DNA of 64,000 nucleotides from Macrostomum lignano (GCA_002269645.1 NIVC01000260.1:496001-560000), one strand, 5' to 3'. Shown: positions 34,887 to 56,498, counted from the first letter of the stretch. Program-made: numbers and translations. The notes: a model not told the origin generated them from the letters alone.

Positions 34887-35186
34887 GCGGTTGATGGAAA
34901 CGCTTAAAAATTAGACTTGCGAATAAAACAGTAGGACACCTGAAAAACCACATTGCCAAGCTAATAAACAGAGCCTGTGACAAGAAAGCTGTGCGATAAT
35001 TTAAAAAATTCTCTACCAACTACAGGTGAAATCATCTAGGCTAAGTGTAGGAATGACTCCGTTTACAATATTGACAACCGATGTTGAAATTGGAGTGAGC
35101 ATTTTCAATCGATCGTTTAATCAATCAAAGGTGTCACAATTCACAAGACCAAACAGCAAACTAGAATCGGGCAGTTCCGCACTGGC

Positions 35187-35281
35187 TCAGTACAGACCGG
35201 TAGTCTGGGCCGTCAGTGCGGCCTCAGCGGTGTTGCGCTGCTGCTTGCGCAACTCAGCAGCCTCCTTGCGCGCCTGCATGC
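35187..35281 (-). CDS. Last coding exon (second half of IQ2)
   Basis: TAG|GC ATG CAG GCG CGC AAG...TAC TGA; completes IQAGFRGMQARKE. Confidence 0.85.
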
Positions 35282-38200
35282 CTATTGGCGACGAGAATTG
35301 GTCGGGTACAGCGTAGGAGGTACATTAGTAATGTTGTATTAATTTCAGGGGGAATAGAAAAGGACGCCTAACAAAGCGTGCGCACAATCAAAGGAGCGCA
35401 TTTGTATAAGCGCGCACCGGTTTAACCGGGCATTTTGTAGGTGCGCGCTGTCATAAGCGAAGCGCACACATTTTCTAAGAAGTGGCACAAGAGCGCACAA
35501 TTTCTAAGAATTGGCACAGGAGCGCACATTTTCTAAGAAGTGGCACAGGAGCGCACAATTTCTAAGAATTGGCACAGGAGCGCACAATTTCTAAGAAGTG
35601 ACACGTGAGACCACTGGGGTGTCAGAGAACGCGTGAACTAAGTGAACTTTGTTTGGACTACCTACTGGAATACTAAATTATTTTTTAACTTTTAAAAAAG
35701 TCATTTTCGTTAGTCCCTTACGCTCAAACTCAAGACTGTGTCCTCAACAAAATCAAAGCGGTAAATTTTCAGCTACTTAGTTAGAAGTATACAGAGCTTA
35801 GCTAATCCACCGTTAGTTCCTGACATGCATAAATACATAAACACAGCAATTCAGACTAACTTCCAAGATGCTTTACCTCGAAATCCGGCCTGAATTTTGA
35901 CAGCTGCCTCCGCGTTCAATTTGTCCTCATCTGCCGCATCAGCTTGGCCATTCTAAAGAAATTTGAAGAAAAAATATGAAGATTAGCACACTACTATATT
36001 TAACTTTTAGTACATCTATTATGAAAATAATTGCAGGCAATTATTTGCAGCGATCAAATGCTGGGATACAAAAAAACAACACTTTAGACTAAACAGCTGC
36101 TAAATTCAAAAACTTTTGCCGCAAGCATTTCAGTTTAGTGATCTGAGCATCAAACTTCATTATAGTTAGTGAAGTAAAAAAACTGATGCAACCAAACAAG
36201 CAACAAGCACATTAATACGCTCGTAAGGTCTAGGTGAAGGCAAAGATGCTAGACTAACCAGATAGGTCACTCGCAATTAAAGTTGTGAAAAAAACAGAGC
36301 CTGTACTCGTCTTTCAGTAGTTTGTCTGCGCAGTGTCACTTAAATTTACTGTGGCAGCTAAAATCTCTTTTCCTTACTCGGAATTTGCGGCCTCAGAAGC
36401 ATATGGGGTTAAGAATGAACAACAAGAATTTAAGAGTCACTTTGAAGATGTATAAAAGTGAACGCAAGAGGGAGACGAAACTGTGTCTAGGGGGGTGGGG
36501 GGCAGGCCCAATCTAGCCCAGCCAATGAGAGAGCAGTAAGGAGAGAGAAAGTAAGACGGACGAAACTCAGCCTAGGGGGAACGTACAAGGTCCAATCTAG
36601 CTCAGCCAATGAGAGAGCAGTAAAGAAAGAGGTCAAAGTCAGATACAGACCTGGCCGGGGCTAGGCTAGGGCGCCACCCCTTTTCTCTTGCCCGCTATGC
36701 ACATTGGTTTGTTTGTTTGCAATTGACGCACTTTAAGCGACATTGTCACACAACCGGCGAGAGGCATTACTGCTCAGTCCGCCGACTCCTTTGAGCAGGT
36801 GCACACAAGCGCGCGGATACGTACGCAGTCATACGCACAGGCACACACTCACACAGCAGTGTACAGCGGCCCTAACTTTATTTATCGTTGGGCATGTACA
36901 CTTTACTGTGCCTTGGGGGGTTCGCCCTCAAGGGCGTTAATTGCGCAAGCAGAGCTAAGCCGAGATTTCAATAAAGCCCCAAATTAATGTGACTGCAATA
37001 AAGGAGCGCCGAGCTAGACCACTAGACTACGGCTTCCGTGAATAAAACAGAGGATGCTAATTTAATGGGCCTGCTTGTAGAAAGCCAGCAAAGATTAACT
37101 ATTTTGTAAAAATTCTTTGCGCGTGCATTATCAAATATCCTGTTATTTCTAGTTTCTGTAGATTAAGACTAAAATAAGGTTTGTTCAAAGATCAGGACCA
37201 GGGAATTTTGCTGATGAAAAGTGAGAACTCCCTAAGAGTCGGGTGTGAACCCAAGAGTCTCGATTCCACTGATTCCTGAGCACACACAATGGGTCTTCAT
37301 AATATCTATAGTAAACTATAGTAATTTTTTGAAGAGTCCGAATTTTTTCATCTTGATACTTGAGAGTTTATAATGTCTAGATTCTGTCAAGATTTCACCG
37401 ACCTTCATCACAAAACTTATTATACTAACTATACTAGCAAAATATTAAATTTAAAGTTCAAAACTGCGTGAACACGTTACCGATGCTGCACAGTTGGAGC
37501 CGCTCGAGTAATGAGAATAATAAGCTATCAAATGCTTCACTAGCCCAGACTTGCACTCATCCATTTTAGATACACATTCGGATTTGAATAAGGTCCAATG
37601 GTTGCGGGATCAGCTATCAGTAAGGAAAATACTCCCCTTTTATACTAATCAAGCTAGAAAGCTCAGGATAGGAAAATTTGTTTCCCGATTTTATCCAACC
37701 ATCAACAGCCCGGGAGCTCGGGATCTCACAGGCCCCTTATTTCTCTCGAACTGGCGCGGACATCCAATGCAAATTCAGAGCATAAGGAACAGGCATTGAA
37801 CGCGGCCGGTCAAGCGTTCACATTGGGCGGTGTCCCGTTAGGCTTTAGGGGCTGGGCAGTTTCTCCAGGCAAAAAGAAGCACAATTCTATACACTTTCGA
37901 TAGAGCAGAATGAAAACCCACTAACTATTGAGCAGTGCTGCGCTTTGAGAAAAAGCGTTGAGGAAAACATGTGGCAATTAACCTGGCGTCTTTGTGTATT
38001 AAAGCTGGTTTAATTTCTCAGGTATGAACTTTTCCATTTCGGCTGGACATCCAGTTGACACTTTTCGGATATTATATAAATAACCGAATATGTGCGACTG
38101 TAGCTTTGTGATTAGACCGTCGGACTCAAAACTTGGAAGGTCGGGGGTTCGATTCCCGATCCCATTGGAACCATTTTTGTCCTTGATCAAGACAACTAGC

Positions 38201-41200
38201 ATTAGCTGGGGTATTGAGGGTGTGTGTGGGTCTTCAAAGCTGCGGCTGAGCTGTTGGTTGCACATCTGACCCAATTTGCGCTGGTGCAACCAAGTATTGC
38301 TATTATTATTAAATATCCGAAAGAACATGTAAAAACATATTTGTTAGCCCACGAAAAGTGCATAAATTTAGACATATAACAGGAAATCCGACTGATAAAA
38401 AGGTAAACCAGAAAAAGGAAGGCAAGAGTCATAGGTTAGAGATATATATAACCCTGACAATTCACGACTACAGCCCTCCTACGGAGGCAGAAGCCACACC
38501 CAGAAAATGTACTCTTACATAAAAAGCTAAATTTTTACGTCATAGAGGAGAGCTAATGGATGATAAGGGCGAATATGCTAAAAGTATCCTGGAGTGCCAC
38601 CCAAGAAGGCGCAGGTGTTTAACTCAAGCGCAATGTTAAGATTGTGTCCAAAAACAAAAAATCATAACAACAAAGCAGAAACGAAAGGCAAGAAACTGAA
38701 GACAAGTTCGAATACTGAGTATAATGCCACGATATCATACGCCAATCTAAACTAAAAACGGCAAACGACAAAAGCGTTGAAATTGCATGCAGCATTCAAC
38801 ACAAGCATCCGGCTATTCTACAGACACTGAATCTGCACCTTGTCATCATTGTCCTCGGGCGCTGCTTCCACAGATTCTCTCTGCTGCGATTCGTCGATTT
38901 GTTCCGCTTTCTTCTTCTTTTTCTTGTTTTTCTTTTTCTTTTCTTGTCTTTTTGGGGCTCCTCGGCTGTGATTCCTTCTGCTACTGGATCACCCTCTACA
39001 TTCTCGGTGGTCTCAGGAACTGCTGCTCCACCTTGATGTTGCCCGTCAGTATGTTCCTCCTTCCACTCACCAACAGCCTCAGGAGATTGAACAGGGTCAT
39101 CTAGATTCTGAGCTACAACAGCAGCAGGTCCCTCCTCACGCTTCTCATCACCAACCGAAGGTGCAGGCTCCTCCTCACGCTTCTCATCAACAACCGAAGG
39201 CGCAGGCTCCTCCTCACGCTTCTCATCACCAACCGAAGGTGCAGGCTCCTCCTCACGCTTTTCATCAACAACCAAAGGCGCAGGCTCCCCTTCACGCTTC
39301 TCATCAGCAAAAGAAGGCGCAGGCTCCTCACGCTTCTCATCAACAACCGAAGGTGCAGGCTCTTCCTCACGCTTCTCATCAACAACAGCGGGTGCAGGTT
39401 CCTCCTCACGCTTCTCATCAACAACCAAAGGCGCAGGCTCCCCTTCACGCTTCTCATCAGCAAAAGAAGGCGCAGGCTCCTCACGCTTCTCATCAACAAC
39501 CGAAGGTGCAGGCTCTTCCTCACGCTTCTCATCAACAACAGCGGGTGCAGGTTCCTCCTCACGCTTCTCATCAACAACCGAAGGTGCAGGCTCCTCCTCA
39601 CGCTTCTCATCACCAACCGAAGGTGCAGGCTCCTCCTCACGCTTCTCATCAGCAACCAAAGGCGCAGGCTCCCCTTCACGCTTCTCATCAGCAAAAGAAG
39701 GCGCAGCCTCCTCACGCTTCTCATCAACAACCGAAGGTGCAGGCTCTTCCTCACGCTTCTCATCAACAACAGCGGGTGCAGGTTCCTCCTCACGCTTCTC
39801 ATCAACAACAGCGGGCGCAGGTTCCTCCTCACGCTTCTCATCAACAACAGCGGGTGCAGGCTCCTCCTCACGCTTCTCATCAACAACAGCGGGTGCAGGC
39901 TCCTCCTCACGCTTCTCATCACCAACCGAAGGTGCAGGCTCCTCCTCACGCTTCTCATCAGCAACCAAAGGCGCAGGCTCCTCACGCTTCTCATCACCAA
40001 CCGAAGGTGCAGGCTCCTCCTCACGCTTCTCATCAACAACCGAAGGTGCAGGCTCCTCCTCACGCTTCTCATCAAAAGCATCCTTAATTTTCGTATCTCT
40101 TTGATTTCTAATCTCCCCACCCAAATCGCATGCTTTTGCTGAGTTCAAACAATCAAACTGCTCAGTCTGTTGTGAGTGACCGTCTGCTGACTCGGCTGAA
40201 CTCGGATTGGCAGCAACAGGTGGCGGCTTCAAAGTGAACCAGGGCGGGGAAAGTTCAAACAATAGAGTATTATATGTAGTTGCAAATTGTAATGGTAAAG
40301 TACATAACAAGTGTACAAGAAAGCTAGGGACCTGATAGACTGACATTTTGAATGGGCTCGGAATACTAACAAGCAGTTAGCACTAAACATGAAAGTAAAT
40401 TATGAAAGAAGAGTATCTATTGAATTCTGACTAGACATCAAATGCACAGGCTTCAATCACGAAAACTAAACTTACCTTATTAGAAATTTGCTCAGTATTG
40501 TTTGCGTCTTGATCATCCTGAAGTGGCGCAGAAGCAGAATCAACAGGCTCTTCTTGGACAGAGTCGCCATTGACAGGTTCTGTTGTCTCTGACAATTCGG
40601 CAGTTTCAGCAGTGGTAGCAACAGCTTCGCCAGCAGTTTCATTGGCAGCTTCATTGCCGACAGCTTCAGTAGCGGTAGTTTCTGCAGCAACGGAATCGGC
40701 GGCGGCAGCTTCGGCAGCGGTAGTTTCAGCAGCAGAAGCTTCAGTAGCAGCGGCAGTTTCAGTGGCGGCAGCTTCAGCGGTGGCAGCTTCGTTGGCGGCA
40801 GCTTCGGCAGCAGCAGCTTCAGCGGCGGCAGCTTTGGCAGCAGCGGCTTCGTTGGCGGCAGCTTCAGCGGCGGCAGCTTCGGCAGCAGCGGCTTCGTTGG
40901 CGGCAGCTTCGGCAGCAGCAGCTTCAGCGGCGGCAGCTTCGGCAGCAGCGGCTTCGTTGGCGGCAGCTTCAGCGGCGGCAGCTTCGGCAGCAGCGGCTTC
41001 GTTGGCGGCAGCTTTGGCAGCAGCAGCTTCAGCGGCGGCAGCTTCGGCAGCAGCGGCTTCGTTGGCGGCAGCTTCGGCAGCAGCAGCTTCAGCGGCGGCA
41101 GCTTCGGCAGCAGCAGCTTCGTTGGCGGCAGCTTCGGCAGCAGCAGCTTCAGCGGCGGCAGCTTCGGCAGCGGCTTCGGCGGCGGCAGCTTCGGCAGCAG

Positions 41201-44200
41201 CAGCTTCAGCAGCGGCAGCTTCTTTTTTCTTGGCTTCTTCGATACGCTGAAGAAGTAAAAACACGATATAAACACGATTAAAATTCGTACTATGCTACTT
41301 CTAATATAAGTAGTGAAAGTAGAGCGCTAAAAAATTGAAATTCTTGCCTTCTGCTCCTCTCGCTTCTTCTTGAATTCAACCCGAGCACGGTGGCCTTTGA
41401 AGCCCGCTTGGATTTTAGCGGCCGCATCCTCTTTCTGCTGCTGCGTCGGCCCTTCAATGATTAGCTGCACAATGGGAGTTTGAGAGAGAGAGCGATGAAT
41501 AATCCGATTATTAATTTATCAATAATAATTCATTAAATATTGCGAAACTGCGTGGGAAAGAGAATTTTAAAGAAAAAAATGGTCTATTGTGAAAATAATT
41601 GCGCACATAACGCAACTTTACTAGCATTTTATAAGTAATAAAATGACTAAAGGCTGAAGCTCAATGCAAACTTTGACTTTTCCTTTTTTAATGACAAAAA
41701 ACACGATAAACGACTTGTACGCGCAAGACAGTTAAAAAAGTTCACGTGTCTGCCTGCAACTTGAATCAGAAGCCGGGTTGTCACTTGTCACAGAGGAAAT
41801 GCGCGTCTTGGAAGAAGTCCTACTTCGAGGACTTCAAAACAACGGAGGAACGAAGTGTTCTGTCTACCCATTGTAGAGAATTGGTGTAGCAGTGGCGCCC
41901 TACATTCATTGACATTAGTCATAGATAATTAATTGGGGGTAGCAGTGGCGCCCTACATTTATTAGTCACAGATAATTGGGGGTAGCAATGGCGCCCTACA
42001 TTTATTAGTCACAGATAATTGGGGTAGCAGTGGCGCCCTACATTTATTAGTCACAGATAATTGGGGTAGCAGTGGCGCCCTACATTTATTAGTCACAGAT
42101 AATTGGGGTAGCAGTGGCGCCCTACATTTATTAGTCACAGATAATTGGGGGTAGCAGTGGCGCCCTACATTTATTAGTCACAGATAATTGGGGGTAGCAG
42201 TAGCGCCCTACATTTATTAGTCACAGATAATTGGGGTAGCAGTGGCGCCCTACATTTATTAGTCACAGATAATTGGGGGTAGCAATGGCGCTCCACTTCA
42301 GTCATAGATAATTGGGGGTAGCAGTGGTGCCCTACATTCATTCACATTAGTCATAGATAATTAATTGGGGGTAGCAGTGGCGCCCTACATTTATTAGTCA
42401 CAGATAATTAAGGGTAGCAGTGGCGCCCTACATTTATTAGTCACAGATAATTGGGGGTAGCAGTGGCGCCCTACATTTATTAGTCACAGATAATTGGGGG
42501 TAGCAGTGGCGCCCTACATTTATTAGTCACAGATAATTGGGGTAGCAGTGGCGCCCTACATTTATTAGTCACAGATAATTGGGGGTAGCAATGGCGCTCC
42601 ACTTCAGTCATAGATAATTGGGGGTAGCAGTGGCGCTCCACTTCAGTCATAGATAATTGGGGGGTAGCAATGGCGCTCCACTTCAGTCATAGATAATTGG
42701 GGGTAGCAGTGGCGCTCCACTTCAGTCATAGATAATTGGGGGTAGCAGTGGCACTCCACTTCAGTCATAGACAATTGGGGGAAGCAGTGGCGCTCCACTT
42801 CAGTCATAGATAATTGGGGGAAGCAGTATCGCTCCACTTCAGTCATAGATAATTGGGGGTAGCAGTGGCACTCCACTTCAGTCATAGACAATTGGGGGTA
42901 GCAGTGGCGCTCCACTTCAGTCATAGATAATTGGGGGTAGCAGTGGCGCTCCACTTCAGTCATAGATAATTGGGGGAAGCAGTGGCACTCCACTTCAGTC
43001 ATAGATAATTGGGGGTAGCAGTGGCACTCCACTTCAGTCATAGATAATTGGGGGGTAGCAGTGGCACTCCACTTCAGTCATAGATAATTGGGGGAAGCAG
43101 TGGCACTCCACTTCAGTCATAGATAATTGGGGGTAGCAGTGATGCCCCACCTAGTCAGCCGCCCTGCTGCTAGCTAAATTGCTTGAATCCGAAGTACTTA
43201 ATCGTTACATAAAACATTTCCCACGCGAACCTGCATTCGCTCCTCCCGATCATGACAGTCTTTGTGCGCCTCCTCCTCTCGTATTTTGCGCTCGTGAAAC
43301 CAATTAGAAAATTTCACGGGCGACACAACGGTGGACGGCGGCGAGAACTGCCTGGGTAAGCTTCTGGCATTGGCCAAGAAGCCGGGACTAAGAGGCAGCT
43401 TGGCCGGCGGCAGGGCCTGAACGCGCAGCGGCAACGGGCGGGCCGGCTTCGGCGGAGCTGACAACGGCGGCGAAATCGGCGACGACGAATCGGTGGCGTC
43501 GCCGCGCTCCGAGTCCTGGACTTCGCCATTGGCAGCAGACGCCGGTCTCGGTGACAGATACTGCTGCTTCAGCGTGTTCCATCTGTCGTTGTAGCTGTCT
43601 CTGTCGTAGCGTTTGAGAAAGTCGTAGCGACCAAGTGTGGCCGCTTTGCGCACGCCAATAGAACCCGGCTGTTGTTGTTGCTGCTGTTGCTGTTGTTTCG
43701 CCACTGGCGCTTCCTGGTGCAAACTCTGCGCTCTTGCTACTGTTATTGTTTCAGTTACTGGAGCCGGCTCAGCGTTGGAATCTGCTTTTGGAGCAGCAAC
43801 GGCAACTTGTTGTTGCGGTTTGCTATTATTAGTCGAAGCTGCTGCAGATGCCGACTGCGGCTGAGGCTTTGCAGGTGTCTCCTGATCGTCGCCAGCTCCT
43901 TTTTGTGCCCGATCGATCGGCTGTTTGGAGTCGTGCTTTGTTTTCTTTTTTCGACGTCCAAAGCAGCCCAACATTTTAATTTTATTATTTCACCAGGCTT
44001 TTAATGTAAACTATTTGAACTGACGCTGCAAGCAGTTGTTGCAATAGATAGGGAAGCGCCTTTGACAATAAATCTTTCTAGTGGAAAATGCGGTGCCAGA
44101 ATGAATCGGTTATTCAGAGAAAGAGAGAGAGCTTGCCTTCTCTTCAGTTTTGTTAAGTGTACGCGCGCACAGACAGGAGTCACCCCGCTCCAACTATTAT

Positions 44201-44280
44201 TAGTGCTTTGTATATAGAGGGGGCTGATGTTAGTAATAAGGGGGGGTTGGAGCTTTTGGGGTTTGTGTTGGGACCCTCTC

Positions 44281-44317
<37 letters not shown>

Positions 44318-47300
44318 CTCTGCAACGAAACGGACCCCCACGGGAGACGAATGGTTTATTCAGGCCCGGTCTGCGTACATTGCTTAATAAACTTGTCTAA
44401 GAGTGGGGGTGGGTGCAATGGGGTGGGGGTCGGGTATGAACACTGGGGGCCTCTAGCGCCCTCCAGTCAGTCCCTCCAATTAAAATAAGCAGAATTCCTC
44501 TCCTTTACGGTCAGTTTAACTCACTTTAACCAACCAAACCACTTAATGTTAAACAGGCATAAAATTAACTAAGTTCAAACCGTAAATTAAAACTGTTTTA
44601 ATTTTTAAACTCCAATATTTTACATTTTAATAAAACTCATTAGTTCGTATTATTCCAGAGTGATTGATATCCTAATGCTTTCTGCTGTTTTTTAGTGTTT
44701 CCTGTTTCGCCCCTCAGACTTCATGTACATGTGGTTATTAAGTTCAGTTACTGCTACTATAATACTGAGATCTACAAAATTATTGAGTAAACATTCAACA
44801 GTTCACAAAAACAAGAGTCTTGGAGACAAGGTCTGAAGTCTCAACTAGAAAGAAATAAAGAAAAATATAGTGTCTAGTGGGCCTTGGGCTGCCCGCCCTA
44901 TAGATAATTTGTAAGTCCAAATCCAGTCGTAAACGCCGCCAGAAAACCTCTTCACACGCGAAACAGTTTAGCAGCATTGTGGTATCGGGGCTAATCTGAT
45001 TTATTAGATAAGAAATAAATAGCTAAGCAAAAACACCACCCACTCTCAAACCCTGATAAACACGACGCATCTGCTGTTCCAGAGACGCGAGAGTTAAGGG
45101 TGGGATAGAGGGGGTCTCAGCAGCGCTCGACAGGCCGCACAAAACAATCGCAAACGCAAGAATTCGAACAGAAATCTAAGACAGACAGACGCGTTTCCGT
45201 CGTGCACTTGGGCCGCAGGGTGTTCAGTGTTTCCTTAACTTGATTATTTCACCAAACCTCCAAGCCAGTCCCCAATGCACACTTGCCCTCAACCAGAAAC
45301 GTTACACGACTCTGCCTTCCTGTTTCTGCACACGACGCGCAGTTCGATAGCAAAGCAAATGGAAAACCAAGAAGAGATCGGGGCAGTAAGAGAGGGGGGG
45401 TGAAATCTAGAGTCAAAGGTTCGAGTGGCATTGGTGCAGTAAAGCCAACCGCCAACCGACCGCCAATGTTACCAAGAGTCAAAGTAGCATAAAGCATTAG
45501 GCTCCATTTAAGCTCCGAAAAATAGCCGAATGTGTGGATGACGCGTGTCACTTTATGAAAAGCATGAAAACGCAACATAGCCGGTTCAGACTTCTGATTA
45601 GTCAGATATATACTGCTTTCTGTACGAGCGCATGACACACAAAATATCTGCACACTTCCTTCACGGCACTACATGTAAACTTGCAAAAACAACGTGCGTA
45701 GTGTACGACAACTCAATATAAACATTTGACAACAGTATCTCGTAATCTCGTAATAAAAGCCAGAAATCCTATCCATTGAAATTACAGATTTAATCCTGAC
45801 TGATAGGCAGGAGCTTAGCCATGGATTTTCTATTTTCCATTTCCATGGGCGCCAGCACCAGGGGCGCCAGCACCAGGGGCGCCAGCACCAGGGGCGCCAG
45901 CACCAGGGGCGCCAGCACCAGGGGCGCCAGCACCAGGGGCGCCAGCACCAGGGGCGCCAGCACCAGGGGCGCCAGCACCAGGGGCGCCAGCACCAGGGGC
46001 GCCAGCACCAGGGGCGCCAGCACCAGGGGCGCCAGCACCAGGGGCGCCAGCACCAGGGGCGCCAGCACCAGGGGCGCCAGCACCAGGGGCGCCAGCACCA
46101 GGGGCGCCAGCACCAGGGGCGCCAGCACCAGGGGCGCCAGCACCAGGGGCGCCAGCACCAGAGGCACCAGAATTTCTGATTTGAGTGGGCGCTAGAGTCA
46201 GGAGCGTCAGTACTATGGGCGCTAGCGCCAAGGGCCCCAAAGCTGCTGCAAGTGGTGCCACACTCGTATACATTTGCAAAGTCATCCATATTCACTTAAA
46301 TCCCCAACTTGCCTACGCCCCTGCCGATAGTAATCCTGGTATTTATCTTGCCAAAATGCCGGATTTAGAGGCCAAATCATGCGGATCCCGGGAATGAATG
46401 AATGCCTGGTATGATACCATGACAGCATGTCTTGACCAAAATGATCCAAAGCTACGCTAAACCCCATAGTTCTGTGGAGTTTTGTTTTCCAAGACTGCTG
46501 CAGCTACATGTACTTGCGACTAAGTCCAAGGCTGAAGCCAGCACGTCACTCAGCATTAGCACCTCCATGGGTATAGGAAATTGCCAGTGCAATGAAAATG
46601 AAAATGGCAACAAAGACGAACTCTAAGGCACTATGAAGGCTACCCACCGAGAAGAGAGAAAGGCGAATGGAGACAAATCACATCGTATTGTACAGTTACG
46701 AATGTGCGTCGCTAATCATTACTGTAGTCTGATTCTCGCGCCACGACCCCTAAAATTGGCCAAGATTTGTCGCGCCTATAAAGAAATAAATGCTGATTGA
46801 ACATGCACAAAAAGTAGTATGATAGTAGAATGGTCAGGAACAACTTCGAGTTTCGGTTATTAAATTTGAACTGACTGAATTTACTTTGTTATTTTTTATA
46901 ACTGTTCTGTTTAACTAAAAGTACATTTGTTTTGGTTTTCTAGCATAAGACTTTACGTTAGGTCTCCATAATCAGAAAACCATGCTAACGAATGCTGGAA
47001 GCAGACAGCGGTTTATGCCTAATACACAACCACAAACACATAGAAATCAGCGAGTAAGCCAGGGTAATAAAAGTACATACTACAACGGCTGTACTACTAA
47101 AGCGTATGTAGCTACAGACTAAGCAAGCAAGCGCACTTCCTTATTATCGTTCGGTCTCCCCCAAACACCGTAAACGCGGAAATTTCACTTAGGCACTGCT
47201 GGACGCGTATCGGAGATTTTTGCAGCTAAAAAAAGTTTGCCTTAAAACACGCGAAAACATCGGGACGAGGATTGCGGAAAATTTCCCACAGTGATGATGC

Positions 47301-50300
47301 AGAGTGGATACTGATTAGGGAAACAACACTTACCGCTTCATCTGCTGCGAGACTGGAATCTGAGTTGGCCCCTTCTTTAACGCTAGAATCAGTGTCGACT
47401 GGGGCTGGGTCAGAAGCAGACAGCGGTAGTTCAGCGGTGCTCCCCGTCGACAGAGGAATGTTGTTGCCTTCCAACTCGTCAGTCGAAGCTGTCTCCGCCA
47501 CGAAATTGGCTCCATTAGACGGACTCGGTCCCTGGGCCTCTGGGAACACTTTCACTGCAGAATTATCAGACCCAGCACATGCGCTGTCTGCACTTCCCTC
47601 CAAGTCAATTTGTCCATAGGTTTCCTTGTGCGCGGCAATGTTCGATTTGTCTTTCTCTGCACAAAAGCTTTCGTCGCCAAGTGCAGACGAAACGTCAGCC
47701 AATCTGTCAGTTGGCTCGTGTCCTATTGCTGTATCGTCTGGTCCAGATGCTTCATCACTGCCTTGGCAACGGTTTAAGTCTGATTCAGATGACCGAGTTG
47801 TGTTGGAAACATCCGCCATCAAAAGTTCATTGCCTAGTTTTTCTTGGTCTTTTAATCCCGAATCTGGTGTATTCGAGTTAACTGTCGACGCATTATCCAA
47901 CTCAGTACTATTGGATACAAGCTGCTGTAACCCCAGGTTGTCAGAAATTTGATGCAGCTCTGATCTCTCCTCAGTAGCTCTTGGTTCGGTTTTTCTCGCA
48001 ATGGGGCTTCCCACAATGTTTTGCGCGCTGGCAGTCTCTGTTTGCTCAGCAGCGGTGCTGTCAGCTAGGGACTGCTGCTCTGCTTCGGTGCTATGCTGAC
48101 CTGCAACTGTGCTGTCAGCTACGGACTGCTGCTCTGCTTCGGTGCTATGCTGACCTGCAACTGTGCTGTCAGCTACGGACTGCTGCTCTGCTTCGGTGCT
48201 ATGCTGACCTGCAACTGTGCTGTCAGCTACGGACTGCTGCTCTGCTTCGGTGCTATGCTGACCTGCAACTGTGCTGTCAGCTACGGACTGCTGCTCTGCT
48301 TCGGTGCTATGCTGACCTGCAACTGTGCTGTCAGCTACGGACTGCTGCTCTGCTTCGGTGCTATGCTGACCTGCAACTGTGCTGTCAGCTACGGACTGCT
48401 GCTCTGCTTCGGTGCTATGCTGACCTGCAACTGTGCTGTCAGCTGATGGCTGATGACCTGTAGCTGTGCTGTCAGCTGATGGCTGCTGATCTGTAGCTGT
48501 GCTGTCAGCTGATGGCTGCTGATCTGTAGCTGTGCTGTCAGCTGATGGCTGCTGATCTGTAGCTGTGCTGTCAGCTGATGGCTGCTGATCTGTAGCTGTG
48601 CTGTCAGCTGATGGCTGCTGATCTGTAGCTGTGCTGTCAGCTGATGGCAAATGACCTGCAACTGTGCTGTCAGCTGATGGCTGATGACCTGTAGCTGTGC
48701 TGTCAGCTGATGGCTGCTGATCTGTAGCTGTGCTGTCAGCTGATGGCTGCTGATCTGTAGCTGTGCTGTCAGCTGATGGCTGCTGATCTGTAGCTGTGCT
48801 GTCAGCTGATGGCTGCTGATCTGCAACTGTGCTGTCAGCTGATGGCTGATGACCTGTAGCTGTGCTGTCAGCTGATGGCTGATGATCTGTAGCTGTGCTG
48901 TCAGCTGATGGCTGCTGATCTGTAGCTGTGCTGTCAGCTGATGGCTGCTGATCTGTAGCTGTGCTGTCAGCTGATGGCTGCTGATCTGTAGCTGTGCTGT
49001 CAGCTGATGGCTGTTGATCTGCAACTGTGCTGTCAGCTACTGGTTGCAGCTCTGCTTCAGTGCTGTCAGCTACTGGTTGCAGCTCTGCTTCAGTGCTGTC
49101 AGCTACTGGTTGCAGCTCTGCTTCAGTGCTGTCAGCTACTGGTTGCAGCTCTGCTTCAGTGCTGTCAGCTACTGGTTGCAGCTCTGCTTCAGTGCTGTCA
49201 GCTACTGGTTGCAGCTCTGCTTCAGTGCTGTCAGCTACTGGTTGCAGCTCTGCTTCAGTGCTGTCAGCTACTGGTTGCAGCTCTGCTTCAGTGCTGTCAG
49301 CTACTGGTTGCAGCTCTGCTTCAGTGCTGTCAGCTACTGGTTGCAGCTCTGCTTCAGTGCTGTCAGCTACTGGTTGCAGCTCTGCTTCAGTGCTGTCAGC
49401 TACTGGTTGCAGCTCTGCTTCAGTGCTGTCAGCTACTGGTTGCAGCTCTGCTTCAGTGCTGTCAGCTACTGGTTGCAGCTCTGCTTCAGTGCTGTCAGCT
49501 ACTGGTTGCAGCTCTGCTTCAGTGCTGTCAGCTACGGGTTGCTGCTCTTCGTCAGAGCTTTTACTTGCGACCACATCACTGTTCGAAATTGTCAGACTCT
49601 TATCTTTAGGGATTTCAACAACATCTGAAGTCAAAGCTCTTACATGTGGCATTAAACCAGCAGCCATATCTTGATCATGCACTTCAGTATCAGCCTCAGG
49701 CTCCAAATTGCCTTCGTCAGATTGCGGAAGCGCAGGAAAGTCGCTTATTTCAGCGTCCGATGCTTCTCCATCAGCAACAGTATCGACTTCAAGAGGACTG
49801 ACCATCTCAAATTCATCCTCAGATGAGATAGGAGATACAATTTCAGCGGTTTCGGGATCATGCTTTTTCGAAGTATCCTCGTTTTGGCTGGGCGGTTCAG
49901 AGGTTGTAGACTTTTCTTCTGTGGGGCAAGCAACGACTTTTGGGAAATCATCTTTTTCAGAGCAGGCTTTTCGCTGCAGGGCGTCTGCATCAACAGTATC
50001 CATGGTAGTATTGGGGTCAATTTTAGCTTTTTGACATTCAGAAGTTTTATCAGCATCTCCAGTTGGAGTTGGTAGTTCATCGCATTCTAACACGTTGTCA
50101 CGATTCGTGTCTGAACTTTGAGAAAGTTCTAGTTTTTTCGAGGAACTTCTAGATGATATTTCCACGGGTGGCCTTGGATGTTCCACTTGATTATTATCGG
50201 AGCTTTCAGTGGCTTCTGCCTGGGCTTCTGAAGTATTATCTGTTGTTGTTTCTGTCTCTATCGCAAATACAAGTAGAGCCTCATCCAAGGGTCTTCCGAA

Positions 50301-53300
50301 TTGTGACCTAGGCGTCTCAGCAATCGTATGAGCAGAGGTAGCTGGTATCACAGCCTGAATAGCACTCTTAGTGGTGCTATAATTAGATGGCGGAATGTCG
50401 GACTTACTGAAGGCGCCAGGCGTAGCTTTGACAGCTGCTTTGGAGGGAGAAGATGTAGCCGAAGTAGCGTCGCCCCACTGCAAGTCGATTGCATATTTGG
50501 ACTCGTCGTTAAGCAGCTCCCGCCGTAGCTTCTTCTTAAAACTTGGGTCTTTTGTGATGAGCCCTTTTGTATTTGTACGGCTCTCTGATGCGATAACCGA
50601 TGAACTGGTCGGATTTGTTCTTCCAAAATTTGAACTGCAGCTCACCTGCTGATGGTGAGCAACGTCGCCATAGTATCTCCTGTCGGGGAATCTGCTTGGC
50701 ACCTGGAGGCGGTTAGCGGGCCCAACAGCTGCCTTCTTTCTGGGCTTCCCAGGGGGCCGAAGATCCATGACAACGTCGTCGAAGATGCGGTCAAGCGAAC
50801 GGTATGACTGTTCCTCTCCGCCTGCCGGTGCAATAGCGCTGTCGATGTTGCGCAGGTCCAGCGAATCCGGCAGCTGGTCTAGACCGCCAACCTCGAGACA
50901 GTCGCGGTCGAGCTCCGAGCTGATGCTTGATTCTTCGACGAATCTCAGCGTGTCAAATTGATCGCTCCGACCGACTAATAAATCAGCGGCATCGATCAGA
51001 TTGCTCAACGAACCGTCCAGTGGCGAAGCTGACGAATCGGACTCTTCGCTACGTCCGCCAAGTGTGCCTTCGTCATCTGAGTCATCATCGACTTCGGCTT
51101 GCTCCGGAAGCTGGGCTGGCTGCTCTGCTGTTGATAAGCGCCGTGTGGCCGTCTCTGCTTGCTCCAACTCCTCTGCCGATGCGTCTAGCAGCTCGGGCGC
51201 GGAGGAACTGGACCGAATGCCGGAGCCGTCGCTGACACCGGGGTCATCGCCGCTGGCTCTTCGCTTCCTACGCAACTGAACTGGCGGATCCAAAGCTGAG
51301 CCGCCTGGCGCGTCTGACGCCCGCTGCAACTGTTGTCGGTCTGGCGGTCCTGACGGCTGGCTTTGAGAAAGACGGTGCTGACTCTGCTGCGAGGTTGATC
51401 GGCGAATGCCAAGCAGACTACCGATGCCTTTGAAGAAAGACTGCATGTCTGCCCTGCAGGCCGTGTAGGGACAGATTCTAGCGGGAAAGACTTTCGACTG
51501 GACGGTGTTAAACTGTTATGTTCCAACCAAAGTTAGGAGCCCGACTGACGTCAAGATCCAAATTTTAAACCTTGGGGTGCCACTCGGAATGCGTGTTTAT
51601 TGGATGGGAGTGGGCGAAAAGCGTGTGGAGTCTAATCAGGGTAAGAGATCAGAGCGGCTCGTCTAGCCGGAGCACTGCAGGGAGCGGACGGCAAGGCTTA
51701 CACCGCGCAGACAGCTTTCTTTAATTCCGCTCTTATTACTACAGTCGTATAGTACTATACTACTATTAAAGCAGCTGCGTCCTAAAGACAGAGGTTTAGT
51801 GCGGCTTCAGATCTAGCCAAGCAGCCTCTCGTTCTCCTGCTTTTGCCAGCCAGGTTTTGGGGTGCAATCAGAAAGGAGAGAGTGGAAGGTACGCGACAGG
51901 AGAAGGAAGCTGAATAGCAGAGGATGAAGGAAATGCGGGTGGATGCGGGGAGGAAGGAGGGGCCCTAGCCCTCTCAGCAGGGGATGTTGTGATTGGAAAG
52001 CGCATGAAGGATACTTGCAGCATCTCGCCCTCTCCATCTGGACCCGACCCTGGCCCAGTCTGTTGTCCAGTGAAACTCGCTCCCGGCCAGCTTTTTGGCT
52101 CCAGCAAAAGTCAGCTCTGCTGGGCGCGCAGCTCCGACATATGCTGCGCAGATCCTCCGGACCCGCCTCCATGCAGCGGTGGCAGCCCAGCAACTGCGGA
52201 GACCCTCCTGATCGGCAGCGCATAGCGACCACCATCTCCCTCCTTCATTTTGGGGCTGTCAAGGTCTTTGAAAAACACAGGATGAAAATTCGAAGTGTGA
52301 ATATGAGGTCTTAATTCTGTGCATAACTTTTCAGCCACCTCGTCAGGCAGAAATTCCATTTTTTAAGTCTAAGAATTCAAGTCCATTCGACTGACACGAG
52401 GGTTTGAATTCCTCCTGGCACTGCAAAAGGACTAGCTAGAATACTAAATCAATGCCCTAAAACTCGAGCATATTCAGATTGCCGCTGCAGTTTGACACCA
52501 AGCAGTGTATACAATGCCAGGCAAAGCGATAAAGATTATCAGGGCGAATTTGGCTTACCCTTTTGTTCGCTGCTTCTGGCGATGCTGCGGAATCCTCATC
52601 AGCAGCAGCAGCGGCTTTGGCCTCATCATTTACAGTCGGGCCATTTCTGAAGCGGTACGACGGGGAGAGAAATTGTTTTTCAGCCTGACAGTTCCAACTT
52701 CACTGCTGCCTCGCAATAAAATAATACTAAAAGCAGACGAATTCATCGAACTTCGCGCATAATATAACATTATTGCTTGCATTATAATGCATGCGGTCAT
52801 TTTTGGCCGTAGAAGCGTCTGCAAGTACGTGCACTTGCAGTGCTACCACGGCATTGATATTAATTCAATATTCCATCACGTAGTCTAATAATCTTAGCCT
52901 AGCAGCAGTGGAGCAGTATAGAGAATACAGCATTTCTGAAGTGGAATGCAGTCAGATGCTTTTGCTTCTGCTGCTGCGGAATTTTAAGCAGAAAAAAACA
53001 ACCGCAATTTTTTGGCGTTGAAAGACGGCGAAGACAGACGGGCAAGGCTTCCTTCTCCCATCCTTCCGACTCGAGCCAAGAATCCCCCTGCGCAGATGTT
53101 TCATCCCAAAATACTTGAATTTACTCTCCACCCCCTCTCACTCGCTCTCAGCCTCTGCTTGACCAACGCTTAAAGATTTTTATCCTCGCATTCGAACTCC
53201 TTATGAAGTTGGTCGATCAATAAACAGTGCTTCGTTCAAGACTGTCTGCTGGCTTATCGAATAATTTTATCTATGATAGTTGTTGCGTTGTCAGTGGGTG

Positions 53301-56300
53301 GCGCAGTTAGCTGCTGCTTTTAGGCGGGGTTGCTATACCACGACATACAGGTAAAAGCCGGAGCGCCAGAAAAATATGACGGCTTTTAAGAATAAACAGC
53401 CTGACGGCTTGTGACCATCCAATTAGCATTAAACCAGCATCGAAAGTAACCCCAGCTATATGAGCTACAATAAAAAGTAATGGTTGGTCGTAAATCTCTA
53501 GTGTAAAATGCTGTGCAAAACAAGAGTACTGCAATAAATTACCCGATGTATATGAATGATAATTTTCCAATATTGTACGCTAATTACAGACCATTTTTAT
53601 CCAATTGTTAATTAATTACTACAGGCTATCTCGTGCTATTGATGGAGACTGCATGGGGGGGCGCTGATAGAAGCAGAGTCATGTAAAAAAGAAAAGAAGC
53701 ACTATGTATACATAAAAAAGTCATGTCGAAGTTACTCGTAAAATATTCATTTGGGAATTGCTACGATGTCAAAGCTTGGAGGGAATCGTTATAGTGCTGT
53801 GATTCTTAAAGGAGGAATTACTAAAATGCCAAGGCTTAGGGGAGAAGAATTACTGAGATTTCAAGGCTTTAGGTTGGGTTAAAGTTAGGTTTAGGTCAGG
53901 CTTGGGTTGAGGGTTAGATTTTAGCGGGTTTCAAGGTTAACAGGGGATTTTTTAGATTTCAAGGTTTATGGGGGCATCGCTGACATGTCAAGGCTTACCT
54001 CGCAATAAAATAATACTAAAAGCAGACGAATTCATCGAACTTCGCGCATAATATAACATTATTGCTTGCATTATAATGCATGCGGTCATTTTTGGCCGTA
54101 GAAGCGTCTGCAAGTACGTGCACTTGCAGTGCTACCACGGCATTGATATTAATTCAATATTCCATCACGTAGTGTCAAGGCTCACGGGGTAGCTGAGATG
54201 TCAAGGCTCACGGGGGTATAAATGAGATGTCAAGGCTAAAGTCAGAAGCTACATGTAGTTTATGAAAAACTTTTTATTACATTATTTGTTGGCTCCTCAC
54301 GGGAGGGATCGCTTATAGAAAAAGCGTTATGTAAAAAATAAAAGAAGCTTCATGTCGAAGTTAAGAGATTCATTTGGGAATCCCTACGATGTCGAGGCTT
54401 GCAGGGAATCACTATAATACTGTAGTGCTATTATGACTCTTGGAGAGAATTACTGAAATTTCAATGCTTTAGGGTTAGGGTTAGGGTTAGGGTTAGGCTA
54501 GGGTTAGAAAGTAGACAGATTTTTTAAGATTTCAAGGCTTATGGGGGCATCGCTGAGATGTCAAGGGTGGAGTTGATGTGTTAAGGCTTGTGGTGGGAAT
54601 TGCTGACATGTCAAGGCTTACAAGGGACTGCTGGGGTAAAATGCGAAGAGACGCTACATGTAGTTTGTTAAAACAACTTGTACTGCATTTTTTAGGCTCC
54701 CCAACGGGGGGCGCTGATTGCTAGTCTCGTGCTATTGATGGAGACTGCATGGGTTTTACAGAAACTTACTTGTTTATTATCAATGAAATGAAAATGAATG
54801 ACAGTTTTAATAATGTATAACTTTTGCGCCTCTATATTTATAGTTAGCTCATTTAACTATTGGATGATTTATTAAGAAAGGTGCGATTCGTTAATATCAT
54901 TGTTTTTTATTCGAGTGTAACTAGATACGTGTAAATTATAGAAAGGACTTGTGTGTATGAGTTAGCGCATAAGCTTAACAAATCCTGCACACTCTGGGGA
55001 GATGTTGCCATAGACGTAACCAATCCTGTACACTCTGGGGAGATGTTGCCATAGACATATCCAATCATGCACACTCTGGGGAGATGTTGCCATAGACGTA
55101 ACCAATCCTGTACACTCTGGGGAGATGTTACCATAGACACAACCAATTCCATAATGAATTTTGACACTCAAAAGTTTCAAGTTAAAATTTTATTTTCAGG
55201 AGCTTCAGAGGAAATAAATATAGCAATAAAGTATTCACGCACTAAAAGCACTATTTCAGTAGGAGATATTGCCCTAAAGCCAGTTCTAAGTTACGACAGT
55301 TAAAAGTACACTTTTAAGACACCTCCTTTTTCAAGAAGAACCAACGTTCGTGTCTGAATTGGAAGCCGCGTCATCAGAAAAAAATGCAGGTGCCAAGGAT
55401 AGCCAATACTCTTCTCTCCCCATGGACCTCGCATTTTTCTTTTTCTAAAAGAAGCTGCGGAACACACTGACATACATAGGAAGAGATTTCCAGACTGTTG
55501 TGCAATCTTGGGACCACAATCCCATCTTAGGCTTGGGGCAAGGACCATGTCTTTGAACTAATTTTCTACCCTTGGAGCTTATAACACCCTACGGCGCGGG
55601 GATCAAGAGACAACAGATGGATTTTCGAATTCCATAGGCTCTTCAAGGCTGCAGTGTAACATTTCTAGAGCTTCGAAGCAGTAAAAAGCCAGACAGTATG
55701 ACCAGGGAATATCCTGAATGAAGGCAAGTACGTGTGGCATGTATTTAGAATGTGCAGGAGCTGCGCAATGTAAGGCAAATACGTTGTTTTTCGATTTCAA
55801 AGCGAAAACACTGTTCACCTAGATACCAATACAGTCTGCAAATGCATGCGTAAGTGCAGTAAAAAGAACAGTTAAACAAAATCTTTCGCCTACACCATAC
55901 TACTCGTTCAAATTAAGGTAAGTAGAAAGAAAATGCACAGCTAGATGCTTTGACAGACATCTAAAATGTCCGGAAATGTTCAAATCTGGGACTCTAGAGG
56001 CGATGGGAAAGCTGAGCACTCAGTGCCAGAGCTGAGAGGTAAGCATGCATTATTCATCAGGATGCAGTCCGCAGTTTCCCTCACCCAGGAGCCTGAGTAG
56101 CCCTGCGGTAAATGCGACCGACTCTCGCGTGACGCGTGACCCTGTACAACCCTAAGCTCAAAAGTCGGTGGAATGGGCAGAACTGCCTCAGCACTGGTTG
56201 TGGGATGATTTCGCCGAAGGCGTTGCGCCAGGGTGCCCGCAGTCATCCTGAATATATTTGCTTTTACTTTTACTTTTACTTTTATCCCTCACCCAGACTG

Positions 56301-56498
56301 GCGTCTTCGAAGCAGGTCTTCGAAGTGAGTCGCTCCGAACTTATAAATATCCGCTGGTCGCTGACGCACAACCTCCAGAGCGAAGCCTTCAAGCAACGCC
56401 TGGAAGCCATCTGGAGGCGGCGGTAGCTTTATTGGGCGCTTTGGATGTCGACGCTTGCGCGGTCGCTCGGTCGCCGTCTCGGTAGTGTTGAGGCTTGA
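35187..56498 (-). CDS. Multi-exon RIIa (D/D) domain + 2 IQ-motif protein (Sp17/neuromodulin-like) with giant repeat exons
   Basis: Exons 56498-56293 (RIIa), 52646-52559, 51453/51446-47334, 43974-43231, 41464-41348 (IQ1), 41246-40476, 40226-38839, 35952-35877 and 35281-35187 (IQ2, stop). Splice phases are mutually compatible. The first ATG exon for the RIIa form was not found. Confidence 0.8.
35450..35603. repeat. 29-bp tandem repeat (intronic)
   Basis: AGCGCACAATTTCTAAGAATTGGCACAGG x about 5. Confidence 0.9.
35877..35952 (-). CDS. IQ2 exon
   Basis: TAG|NGQADAADEDKLNAEAAVKIQAGFR G|GTAAAG. Confidence 0.85.
38094..38310 (+). mobile_element. tRNA-derived SINE, copy C (internally deleted)
   Basis: GGTTCGATTCCCGA B box and GCTGCGGCTGAGCTG.TGGTTGCACATCTG tail shared with copies A and B. 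Confidence 0.8.
38839..40226 (-). CDS. Acidic repeat exon (DEKREEEPAPSVV)n
   Basis: Open across about 25 repeats of 36-39 bp. One extra A near 38940 gives KKKKKKNKKKKKKAEQIDESQQRESVEAAPEDNDDK|GT and a phase-0/0 exon. Confidence 0.7.
40476..41246 (-). CDS. Ala/Glu-rich (EAAAA/EAAAN)n exon
   Basis: CAG|RIEEAKKK...ISNK|GTAAGT, 771 nt, phase 0/0. Confidence 0.85.
41348..41464 (-). CDS. IQ1 exon
   Basis: CAG|LIIEGPTQQQKEDAAAKIQAGFKGHRARVEFKKKREEQK|GCAAGA (GC donor), 117 nt. Confidence 0.85.
41886..43147. repeat. Compound intronic satellite (42-43-bp type grading into 39-bp type)
   Basis: GGGGTAGCAGTGGCGCCCTACATTTATTAGTCACAGATAATT, then GGGGGTAGCAGTGGCGCTCCACTTCAGTCATAGATAATT. Confidence 0.95.
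43231..43974 (-). CDS. Probable alternative first exon with Cys/basic N-terminus
   Basis: MLGCFGRRKKKTK..., 248 codons to CAG|GT (phase 0). TCAGTT initiator-like motif about 65 nt upstream, and a (CT)n/(GA)n tract at 44285-44315. Confidence 0.65.
45847..46161. repeat. Perfect 15-bp minisatellite (GCGCCAGCACCAGGG) x about 21
   Basis: Homogeneous array; it opens ORFs in several frames. Confidence 0.97.
47334..51446 (-). CDS. 4.1-kb low-complexity acidic exon (1371 codons)
   Basis: Uninterrupted ORF with 33-bp (EAELQPVADST, ATDQQPSADST) and 54-bp repeats. Ends GCG|GTAAGT in phase 0. CAG acceptor at 51454-51456. Confidence 0.8.
52559..52646 (-). CDS. Short linker exon
   Basis: Strong pyrimidine tract + CAG|A AAT GGC...AAA AGG|GTAAGC. 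Phase 2 start matches the RIIa exon donor. Confidence 0.65.
53998..54173 (+). repeat. 176-bp exact copy of 52709-52884
   Basis: Base-for-base identical by eye, inserted between two TGTCAAGGCT subrepeats. Confidence 0.95.
54469..54507 (+). repeat. Interstitial (TTAGGG)4 plus variants
   Basis: Four perfect units at 54469-54492 inside the Helitron-like unit. Confidence 0.9.
54980..55147. repeat. 41-bp tandem repeat x4
   Basis: CCTGTACACTCTGGGGAGATGTTGCCATAGACGTAACCAAT. Confidence 0.9.
56293..56498 (-). CDS. RIIa dimerization/docking domain exon
   Basis: PPPPDGFQALLEGFALEVVRQRPADIYKFGATHFEDLL matches the PKA-RII/Sp17 D/D pattern. CAG acceptor at 56499-56501 and GG|GTGAG donor. Confidence 0.85.

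Follow-up and report, generated by a model that had tools for sequence, protein, structure and literature searches.

The window analysed here is a 64,000-nucleotide (nt) stretch of the Macrostomum lignano genome (GCA_002269645.1, NIVC01000260.1:496001-560000), in which an exon encoding an RIIa docking domain and two IQ motifs lie between positions 56498 and 35187, separated by very large exons built from tandem repeats. An initial annotation read them as one gene with interchangeable giant exons, in which alternative splicing and minisatellite expansion would tune the distance between a docking site for A-kinase anchoring proteins (AKAPs) and calmodulin sites, and it pointed to Sp17 as a small protein of the same domain content. 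The locus appears to descend from SPA17/Sp17, and its large exons may have arisen within one of the introns of that gene.

The RIIa exon, both IQ motifs and all large exons are on the minus strand of a window that holds many minisatellites (54 rows in Tandem Repeats Finder, TRF) as well as open reading frames (ORFs) of retroelements. Domains were called with Pfam and tandem repeats with TRF, structure matches come from searches of all PDB chains, and folds were predicted with AlphaFold2 (AF2). P0001 to P0005 denote database gene models, whose origin could not be verified. In the direction of reading, with exon borders marked by a slash, the exons are:

56498-56293, minus strand: RIIa docking/dimerisation exon, 206 nt, recognised from Pfam PF02197, from the reading of the DNA and from the starts of database models
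52646-52559, minus strand: exon 2, 88 nt (NGPTVNDEAKAAAAADEDSAASPEAANKR), supported by P0001 and P0004; residues 70-100 of P0001 map here
51453-47334, minus strand: giant acidic exon or ORF, with its own ATG at 51446 and a phase-0 donor, GCG/GTAAGT
49533-48055, minus strand: three coding minisatellite blocks within the giant exon, with TRF matches of 96-99%
41464-41348, minus strand: IQ1 exon, 117 nt, phase 0-0, acceptor GTGCAG/, donor AAG/GCAAGA, called by Pfam
41246-40476, minus strand: Ala/Glu (AE) exon, 771 nt, (EAAAA)n, phase 0-0, acceptor TCTTCAG/, donor AAG/GTAAGT
40226-38839, minus strand: EKR (EKREEEPAP) exon, 1388 nt, acceptor TTTGAAG/, donor AAG/GTGCAG
35952-35877, minus strand: IQ2a exon, NGQADAADEDKLNAEAAVKIQAGFR plus one G, acceptor TTCTTTAG/, donor G/GTAAAG, joined to the EKR exon in P0002 and P0005
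35281-35187, minus strand: IQ2b exon, GMQARKEAAELRKQQ...TTGLY, starting behind an AG, with its TGA at 35189-35187 and an ATTAAA at 35121

The Pfam scan bore out the RIIa exon and the two IQ motifs of the initial annotation. The RIIa exon matched PF02197 with E=1.3e-10 (41 bits, cut-off 22.4), and did so equally within the joined protein, and IQ1 matched PF00612 with E=4.4e-5. IQ2 is split by an intron: IQ2a ends in ...AVKIQAGFR plus one G at 35877, and the motif passed only after IQ2a and IQ2b had been joined (PF00612, E=1.3e-5, 25 bits, cut-off 20.3), with 31 residues following beyond FRG.

When the RIIa exon, exon 2, IQ2a and IQ2b are joined, they stay in frame and give a protein of 155 aa including an initiator Met. 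This short join aligns with human Sp17 (8j07_K, 151 aa) at E=1.5e-10, residues 29-138 being colinear with residues 13-141, and the joined 154-aa query had Sp17 chains as its top three PDB matches (8j07_K, 9fqr, 7my4). The RIIa part likewise has Sp17 as its best structure match, with E=3.6e-6 for the Sp17 docking/dimerisation crystal (7my4, RIIa only, 74 aa) against about 1e-4 for PKA RII-alpha and RII-beta and 5e-4 for RSP7. Among PDB chains, IQ1 is best matched by RSP23 (E=7e-7) and Sp17 (E=6e-4), compared to 0.16 for neurogranin, and IQ2 by RSP23 (E=6e-10) and Sp17; for both motifs these matches are far ahead of neurogranin and myosin. By their alignments, both IQ motifs are thus of the axonemal Sp17/RSP23 type. 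Since the short join aligns end to end with human Sp17, the descent of the locus from SPA17/Sp17 is well supported at the level of sequence, and it is the best-supported conclusion of our analysis; the comparison with Sp17 made in the initial annotation is upheld by these matches.

Sp17 is an RIIa-plus-IQ protein of motile cilia and sperm flagella, whose RIIa dimer docks on an amphipathic AKAP-type helix; RSP7 docks on RSP3 in radial spokes. Sp17 is modelled in solved axoneme structures, among them 8j07 and 9fqr. PMC8339350 describes SPA17 as the counterpart of RSP7 in metazoans; the vertebrate protein pairs with ROPN1L as a heterodimer, binds helices of the AKAP type and is located in the axoneme. 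The core of the M. lignano locus would function in the manner of Sp17/RSP7, through docking of an RIIa dimer and an IQ motif. The M. lignano locus shares with Sp17 the order of an N-terminal RIIa domain and a C-terminal IQ motif and, in the putative join, the size (155 aa against 151 aa in human), and the similarity extends into an acidic ..EDK.. stretch before the IQ motif and an ..AR.EA.. stretch after it. It differs in that the RIIa and IQ2 halves are 21 kb apart, the single polypeptide being putative, and that between them stand a second, duplicated IQ exon and roughly 6.3 kb of coding exons in phase 0 that are specific to this lineage and for the most part repetitive. It also has a 28-residue basic N-terminal extension and a start codon apparently supplied by a spliced leader (SL). 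The additional exons have no counterpart in the retrieved Sp17 chains (147-151 aa), and we know of no other Sp17 with such lineage-specific repeat exons; a form including all exons would have about 2,280 codons.

The junctions between these exons are uniform in phase. All seven well-defined ones are in phase 0, namely the donors of exon 2, the giant exon and the EKR exon, both borders of the AE exon, and the acceptors of IQ1 and IQ2a, the EKR donor being counted after a 1-nt correction. By our own estimate, this would occur by chance in about 0.4% of cases at a phase-0 frequency of about 0.45. Such uniformity is what exons that arose inside a phase-0 intron of Sp17 should show, and it would be unlikely among unrelated genes. 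The initial annotation had placed the ends of the large exons and of IQ1 in phase 0, which holds outright for the giant and AE exons, for IQ1 only with a GC donor and for the EKR exon only after the correction. Its exon sizes were exact for the 771-nt exon and right for the giant exon if its 4113 nt are counted from the ATG at 51446, not from the acceptor, to the exon end at 47334; the third, about 1389 nt, does not agree with the 1388 nt of the EKR exon as assembled. Its statement that each large exon consists of a different in-frame tandem repeat stands: the periods in all three (30/105, 39, 33 and 54 nt) are divisible by 3, and repeats occupy about 36% of the giant exon, 73% of the AE exon and 69% of the EKR exon.

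The giant exon has two candidate acceptors, CTGCAG/ at 51453 (phase 2), which is the better of the two and is in frame with the donor of the RIIa exon, and ATGCAG/ at 51440 (phase 0), which is in frame with that of exon 2. Its non-repetitive start comprises 633 open codons and exceeds the longest ORF in any of 100 block-shuffled windows (mean longest 215 codons, maximum 336); these 633 codons and a further 246 non-repetitive open codons show coding-type G1/G2 periodicity. The ORF closes 35 codons past its GTAAGT donor, and neither AATAAA nor ATTAAA occurs in the next 1.4 kb. With a consensus donor and no poly(A) hexamer over this distance, it looks like a spliced exon, and IQ1 looks like the first convincing downstream phase-0 partner that we found for it. 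Between 35 and 57 kb, the minus strand has only four GTAAGT sequences, and two of them fall, beyond chance, exactly where the two best-defined large exons, the giant and the 771-nt one, end in phase 0; a further observation is a consensus GTAAGT at 50407 (minus strand), within the giant ORF and in phase 1, which is a possible cryptic or alternative donor.

The three repeat blocks of the giant exon contain about 15 copies of PVADSTEAELQ and about 19 of PSADSTATDQQ (33 nt each; TRF array of 33.8 copies at 48418-49533) and 7 copies of STEAEQQSVADSTVAGQH (54 nt; TRF array of 7.2 copies at 48055-48444). Because their units are 96-99% identical, we judge these blocks to be very recent expansions. 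The encoded protein, in which Ser, Ala, Asp and Thr are abundant, is acidic (isoelectric point, pI, 4.05; net charge about -180). For its N-terminal 633 aa, AF2 predicted no fold beyond two short helices, with a mean predicted local distance difference test (pLDDT) of 39 in a single-sequence run, for which low confidence is not proof of disorder. As a candidate docking partner for the RIIa domain we considered AKAP-type amphipathic helices in the giant exon and rejected them, the consensus pattern having one match where 1.6 are expected, with no enrichment.

Downstream, the end of IQ1 and the AE exon read ...KKKREEQK/RIEEAKKKE(EAAAA)n, placing IQ1 directly before the helical repeat (30/105 nt, TRF, 40661-41222). 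AF2 modelled the AE exon with its IQ1 lead-in as one helix over residues 2-218 (217 residues, mean pLDDT 84.5), which at 0.15 nm per residue corresponds to a predicted length of about 32 nm. The prediction fits a spacer role, and we treat the long helix as a hypothesis because AlphaFold favours helices in Ala-rich sequence. The EKR exon contains 24.7 copies of the 39-nt DEKREEEPAPSVV repeat (TRF, 39124-40075) and encodes a proline-containing, acidic segment (pI 4.26) that is probably extended or disordered. Unit-versus-consensus differences fall on codon positions 1, 2 and 3 in the ratio 6/12/28, counted over units that are not independent since they form higher-order repeats, and every unit is either 36 or 39 nt long. 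Both the third-position bias and the unit lengths are what a translated frame predicts. Across this array, P0005 is about 34 residues (about 2.6 units) shorter than the window, which hints at repeat-length variation or assembly collapse.

The start of the gene is likely to involve trans-splicing. The RIIa exon is bordered by an acceptor, TTGCAG/TCA, at 56498 and a phase-2 donor, GG/GTGAGG; its frame contains no ATG, and a TAA lies three codons upstream of the exon start. P0001, P0003 and P0004 all have 56498 as their first base and lack a Met. In M. lignano, about 30-39% of genes are trans-spliced (PMC8629364, PMC5730564) to a 35-nt leader that ends in ...TTGCATG, with an enriched [T/C]TNCAG acceptor motif (PMC8629364). 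The conserved 3'-terminal ATG of flatworm leaders is a potential start codon (PMC12582326), and Cheng et al. 2006, as cited there, described the leader ATG as an initiator methionine. The RIIa exon has such an acceptor, no in-frame ATG of its own, and a reading frame in phase 0 with the leader ATG. Given this phase and three independent models that start exactly at 56498, its mRNA is probably SL trans-spliced there, with the terminal AUG of the leader serving as the start codon. A search of the 64-kb window for the SL RNA gene gave none.

The intron that separates the RIIa exon from exon 2 contains a perfect 176-nt direct repeat (52709-52884 and 53998-54173, 1,289 bp apart), which represents a segmental duplication of recent date or else the two ends of an element that was inserted, and a telomere-like interstitial tract, (TTAGGG)x6.7, at 54469-54507.

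A search with the RIIa exon and the last IQ exons as a combined query matched only two protein clusters, P0001 and P0002, both from M. lignano. P0001, named RIIa domain-containing protein, is 100% identical across the RIIa exon, and P0002 is 91% identical across the IQ end. P0002 starts inside the EKR repeat and continues through IQ2a and IQ2b to a stop, as would a model that derives from a transcript and was interrupted by the repeat. A member of these clusters, P0005 (UniRef A0A1I8IY56, 722 aa, publicly named 'Translation initiation factor IF-2'), matches several segments of the window at 100%, begins at the IQ1 acceptor (41464) and joins IQ1 to EKR, IQ2a and IQ2b. Its IQ1 and EKR parts are joined through a GTTGA donor and an internal AG; with its frameshifted repeat units, this makes it look like an ab initio prediction unable to use the GC donor. 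The models and the phase-0 junctions hence support the EKR-IQ2 and IQ1-EKR-IQ2 parts of the one-gene claim of the initial annotation; its other part, RIIa joined to an IQ exon, occurs in none of the models.

Two features within or next to this region had been overlooked by the initial annotation, which also gave no strand and did not consider SL trans-splicing or operons, nor the frameshift in the 1388-nt exon:

43974-43198, minus strand: basic ORF (MLGCFGRRKKK...), 258 aa, with its own ATG and ending in TAA, rich in Pro, Gln and Ala
34140-34118, minus strand: probable alternative last exon, D-EASNQE followed by a stop, acceptor ctgtctgtttcag/, to which the C-terminus of P0002 maps

The alternative last exon is reached from a donor, G/GTCTGT, at 35197, just ahead of the TGA of IQ2b. 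Its acceptor is strong, the C-terminus of P0002 reads ...QTT/DEASNQE followed by a stop, and an AATAAA lies at 33941. Two alternative C-termini are therefore possible, with the gene reaching about 1.1 kb past 35187, the lower coordinate of the initial annotation. The intron from 35197 to 34140 would hold a 28-mer minisatellite (34242-34888). Beyond IQ2b, P0005 runs on into a minisatellite at 30.5 kb and weakly similar sequence, of about 48% identity, at 27-28 kb (27430-30574). We rejected this extension as part of the gene and regard it as a chimeric prediction, its identity being 48-89% and the 30.5-kb match lying in a 28-mer minisatellite.

The MLGCFG ORF lies between the giant exon and IQ1. 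It shows coding-type G1/G2 periodicity and is preceded by an in-frame stop at 5 codons, a TTGCAG/ acceptor at about 50 nt and an AATAAA at 44360; the phase-0 donors ahead of its TAA, CAG/GTTCGC and CGC/GTGGGA, are only weak. It had no Pfam family at E<=1, Neuromodulin_N included, and no database homologues. One possibility is a gene of its own, nested or operonic; another is an alternative first exon that would anchor the IQ part in the membrane. A Cys beside a basic cluster, just upstream of IQ1 and Ala/Glu sequence, recalls GAP-43, neurogranin and Drosophila igloo, which are membrane-anchored IQ proteins. In contrast to these, the ORF lacks Neuromodulin_N and has weak donors, and neurogranin falls far below Sp17 as a match to IQ1; we rejected homology to GAP-43/igloo for want of Pfam support. 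The same gap holds two minisatellites, neither with convincing splice sites: one at 41912-43146, of 39-43-nt units that each carry an AATAAA on the minus strand and whose frames are broken by indels, and one at 45843-46170, of 15-nt units that are 99% identical (GAGAP in one frame) and open in all frames. A reading of IQ1 as a terminal exon (..ARISIF, stop) was ruled out, as the sequence beyond it is free of poly(A) hexamers over more than 3 kb.

Several searches gave nothing further. Look-ups by exact protein retrieved no contigs for P0001, P0002, the MLGCFG ORF or the giant ORF, and two large chimeric queries (giant ORF, MLGCFG ORF, IQ1, exon ends) yielded 8000 word-sharing candidates, none of them significant. 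Literature on Macrostomum and SPA17, including the supplements of the eLife transcriptome paper, yielded nothing. Among intron ORFs we found no convincing plus-strand genes, the Pfam scan having covered only repeat frames of the minus strand.

The model we favour, with a probability of about 0.45, is that of an Sp17 descendant that gained lineage-specific phase-0 exons and is expressed in short and long RIIa-IQ forms. The ancestral core would be the RIIa exon, exon 2, IQ2a and IQ2b (155 aa). The phase-0 intron between exon 2 and IQ2a would then have gained a 4.1-kb orphan exon, acidic and disordered, with three very young minisatellite blocks, as well as a second Sp17-type IQ exon, the 771-nt (EAAAA)n exon and the 1.39-kb DEKREEEPAPSVV-repeat exon. 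Because all boundaries are in phase 0, the inserted exons could be included or skipped while leaving IQ2 intact. The products would be a short canonical Sp17 and long forms with acidic, helical or disordered spacers between the dock and one or two calmodulin sites. A role of these segments as a spacer or tether between the docking dimer and the calmodulin sites would be structurally reasonable on the predicted folds. Its parts differ in strength. A single transcription unit on one strand is quite probable, and the odds that some mature mRNA contains RIIa together with an IQ motif are slightly better than even; the full model of the initial annotation, giant exon included, is doubtful. Domains, exon borders and phases, repeats, colinearity with Sp17 and models that join EKR to IQ2a and IQ2b are observed directly; that RIIa shares an mRNA with the IQ exons, that the giant exon is included, that splicing is alternative and that any segment acts as a spacer is what we infer.

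Known systems offer partial parallels to such a protein. The RIIa domain of Chlamydomonas RSP7 is matched by the RIIa exon (E=5e-4). Chlamydomonas RSP23/NDK has several IQ motifs (three) with Ala/Glu/Pro-rich spacers, as in the IQ1-spacer-IQ2 arrangement here; it differs by its EF-hand and NDK domains, of which there are none here, and the spacers here are far longer and are tandem minisatellites. CABYR has an RIIa domain followed by a long proline-rich or acidic low-complexity region, many splice isoforms and no IQ motif. The likeness, an RIIa domain with a long low-complexity extension, is an analogy only, and CABYR is not among the matches to the RIIa exon. Equally by analogy only, the IQ1-AE segment resembles myosin IQ motifs with ER/K single-alpha-helix levers and (EAAAK)n linkers, in which a calmodulin site is extended by a stiff helix; here there is no motor domain, (EAAAA)n lacks Lys/Arg salt bridges, and the helix comes from a single-sequence prediction.

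A number of observations weigh against the favoured model. P0001, P0003 and P0004 all break off where exon 2 meets its donor (AGG/GTAAGC, at a phase-0 exon end), and in none of the models is RIIa linked to an IQ exon. IQ1 lacks a GT donor and ends in phase 0 only through AAG/GCAAGA. The EKR acceptor, ending in AAG, is weak. Compared with P0002 and P0005, both of which stay in frame, the EKR exon lacks one base within an A-rich run of Lys codons (38952-38922), so that in the assembled frame translation stops 11 codons into IQ2a. This break is most likely a homopolymer error of long-read assembly; it could also be a real frameshift allele, by which IQ2 is lost from the long isoforms. The proposed 5.9-kb intron from the giant exon to IQ1 is interrupted by the MLGCFG ORF, which has an ATG and a stop of its own. 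When 1.84 billion representative proteins were searched exhaustively by HMMER with the first 633 aa of the giant ORF, no homologue came up, and the lack of any database homologue leaves the expression of this ORF putative. The trans-splice motif alone is weak evidence for the proposed start, because it occurs once per 301 nt on the minus strand. Finally, an AATAAA at 51601-51596 is followed after 147 nt by CTGCAG/ at 51453 and, 7 nt on, by the ATG at 51446 with a purine at -3, a layout that looks like the geometry of an operon junction, where a poly(A) signal is expected about 100 nt before the trans-splice acceptor of the next cistron.

Taken up as evidence, this layout leads to the strongest rival, which we hold to be a serious possibility if short of an even chance. 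According to it, an ancestral Sp17 was broken into same-strand cistrons, which SL trans-splicing resolves, and RIIa and IQ are never part of one polypeptide. The first cistron would consist of the RIIa exon and exon 2, perhaps with a short terminal exon, and be polyadenylated near 51580, the AATAAA at 51601 being a possible poly(A) signal of this upstream RIIa-only unit. The second would be an acidic IQ protein starting from ATG 51446 (giant, IQ1, AE, EKR, IQ2) or from an SL AUG at 41464, and the MLGCFG ORF would possibly be a third. The database models divide precisely in this way, into RIIa (P0001, P0003, P0004) and IQ (P0002, P0005). A layout like that at 51601 recurs at the MLGCFG ORF, where the AATAAA at 44360 is followed by a (GA)n tract, the TTGCAG/ acceptor and the ATG. 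AATAAA-bearing 39-mers lie between the TAA of this ORF and IQ1, and an ATTAAA at 41692 is 228 nt before the IQ1 acceptor. The acceptors of RIIa, the giant exon (51440) and IQ1 are all in phase 0, with an SL AUG in frame at each. M. lignano is also a suitable setting, with about 15% of genes operonic, about 39% trans-spliced, and repeats often padding intercistronic regions (PMC8629364, PMC5730564).

On the other side, the order and size of RIIa plus IQ are colinear from human to the M. lignano locus, exon 2 joins IQ2a in frame, and the uniform phase 0 is predicted by insertion into one pre-existing gene. Exon 2 ends in a good GTAAG donor, and no convincing terminal exon precedes 51601: our search between exon 2 and this position gave 25 unremarkable residues as the best candidate, and read-through of exon 2 leads into a Cys/Trp/His-rich tail. 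Trans-splicing at 51453 would place the SL AUG out of frame, creating a 12-codon upstream ORF that overlaps ATG 51446. Both the poly(A) and the trans-splice motifs are common by chance.

The next reading, which we consider unlikely, accepts only the short Sp17 (RIIa, exon 2, IQ2a, IQ2b) as an RIIa product. The giant and MLGCFG ORFs would then be nested genes or non-functional young ORFs, and IQ1, AE and EKR would belong to a separate, truncated transcript with the IQ2 end in common. The 155-aa join, which fits Sp17 in size and order, and the start of P0005 at IQ1 agree with this, as do the properties of the giant ORF, an orphan without homologues or predicted fold whose 96-99% identical repeats are very recent. 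It has difficulty explaining why P0001, P0003 and P0004 stop before IQ2a, given that a short transcript should be easy to assemble. The giant ORF moreover ends at a phase-0 consensus donor instead of a stop and poly(A) signal, and its 633 + 246 open codons with G1/G2 periodicity argue for a maintained coding exon.

A further reading, which we regard as improbable, is a switchable fusion/fission gene, in which the choice between cis-splicing and polyadenylation plus SL trans-splicing would yield either a long scaffold or separate RIIa and IQ proteins. Each module (56498, 51440, 41464) would be independently translatable owing to its phase-0 acceptor, which places the SL AUG in frame. Fast-evolving coding minisatellites would set spacer length, and thereby tune the tether linking the dock to the calmodulin sites.

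A repeat-driven misassembly of unrelated RIIa, ORF and IQ segments together with the frameshift is hardly credible: repeats make up over half of the genome, simple and tandem ones 15% (PMC5730564), the frame breaks by 1 nt in an A-rich run, and P0005, from another assembly, also has frameshifted repeat units, yet independent models from another assembly show an unchanged order of the pieces, RIIa-exon 2 and IQ1/EKR/IQ2, at 97-100% identity, junction phases are coherent over 21 kb, and the non-repetitive flanks of every repeat array are continuous ORFs.

Elsewhere in the window, ORFs of a Ty3/gypsy-type LTR (long terminal repeat) retroelement with broken frames lie at 5552-9433 and 2899-3336 (both minus strand); they encode a zinc knuckle, aspartyl protease, reverse transcriptase, RNase H and integrase, and there is a separate reverse transcriptase fragment. 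Two arrays of the same 14-nt unit (GGCTGGCAAACGTC), at 61917-62220 and 63181-63498, are inverted relative to each other and flank about 1 kb.

To return to the Sp17 descendant with inserted exons, this gene model is plausible but unverified, and coding minisatellites are to be expected where tandem repeats make up 15% of the genome; according to the genome paper, public transcript data exist for M. lignano (PMC5730564). If the locus is one gene, it would be a natural experiment on disordered and helical spacers born from minisatellites inside an intron, and could show whether the distance between an AKAP-type dock and a calmodulin site matters. If it consists of separate cistrons, it would represent the fission of an ancient two-domain gene, enabled by SL trans-splicing and an SL-donated start. 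And if the two states can be switched, it would reveal a mechanism of modular gene fission and fusion, in which coding minisatellites set the length of the spacer.

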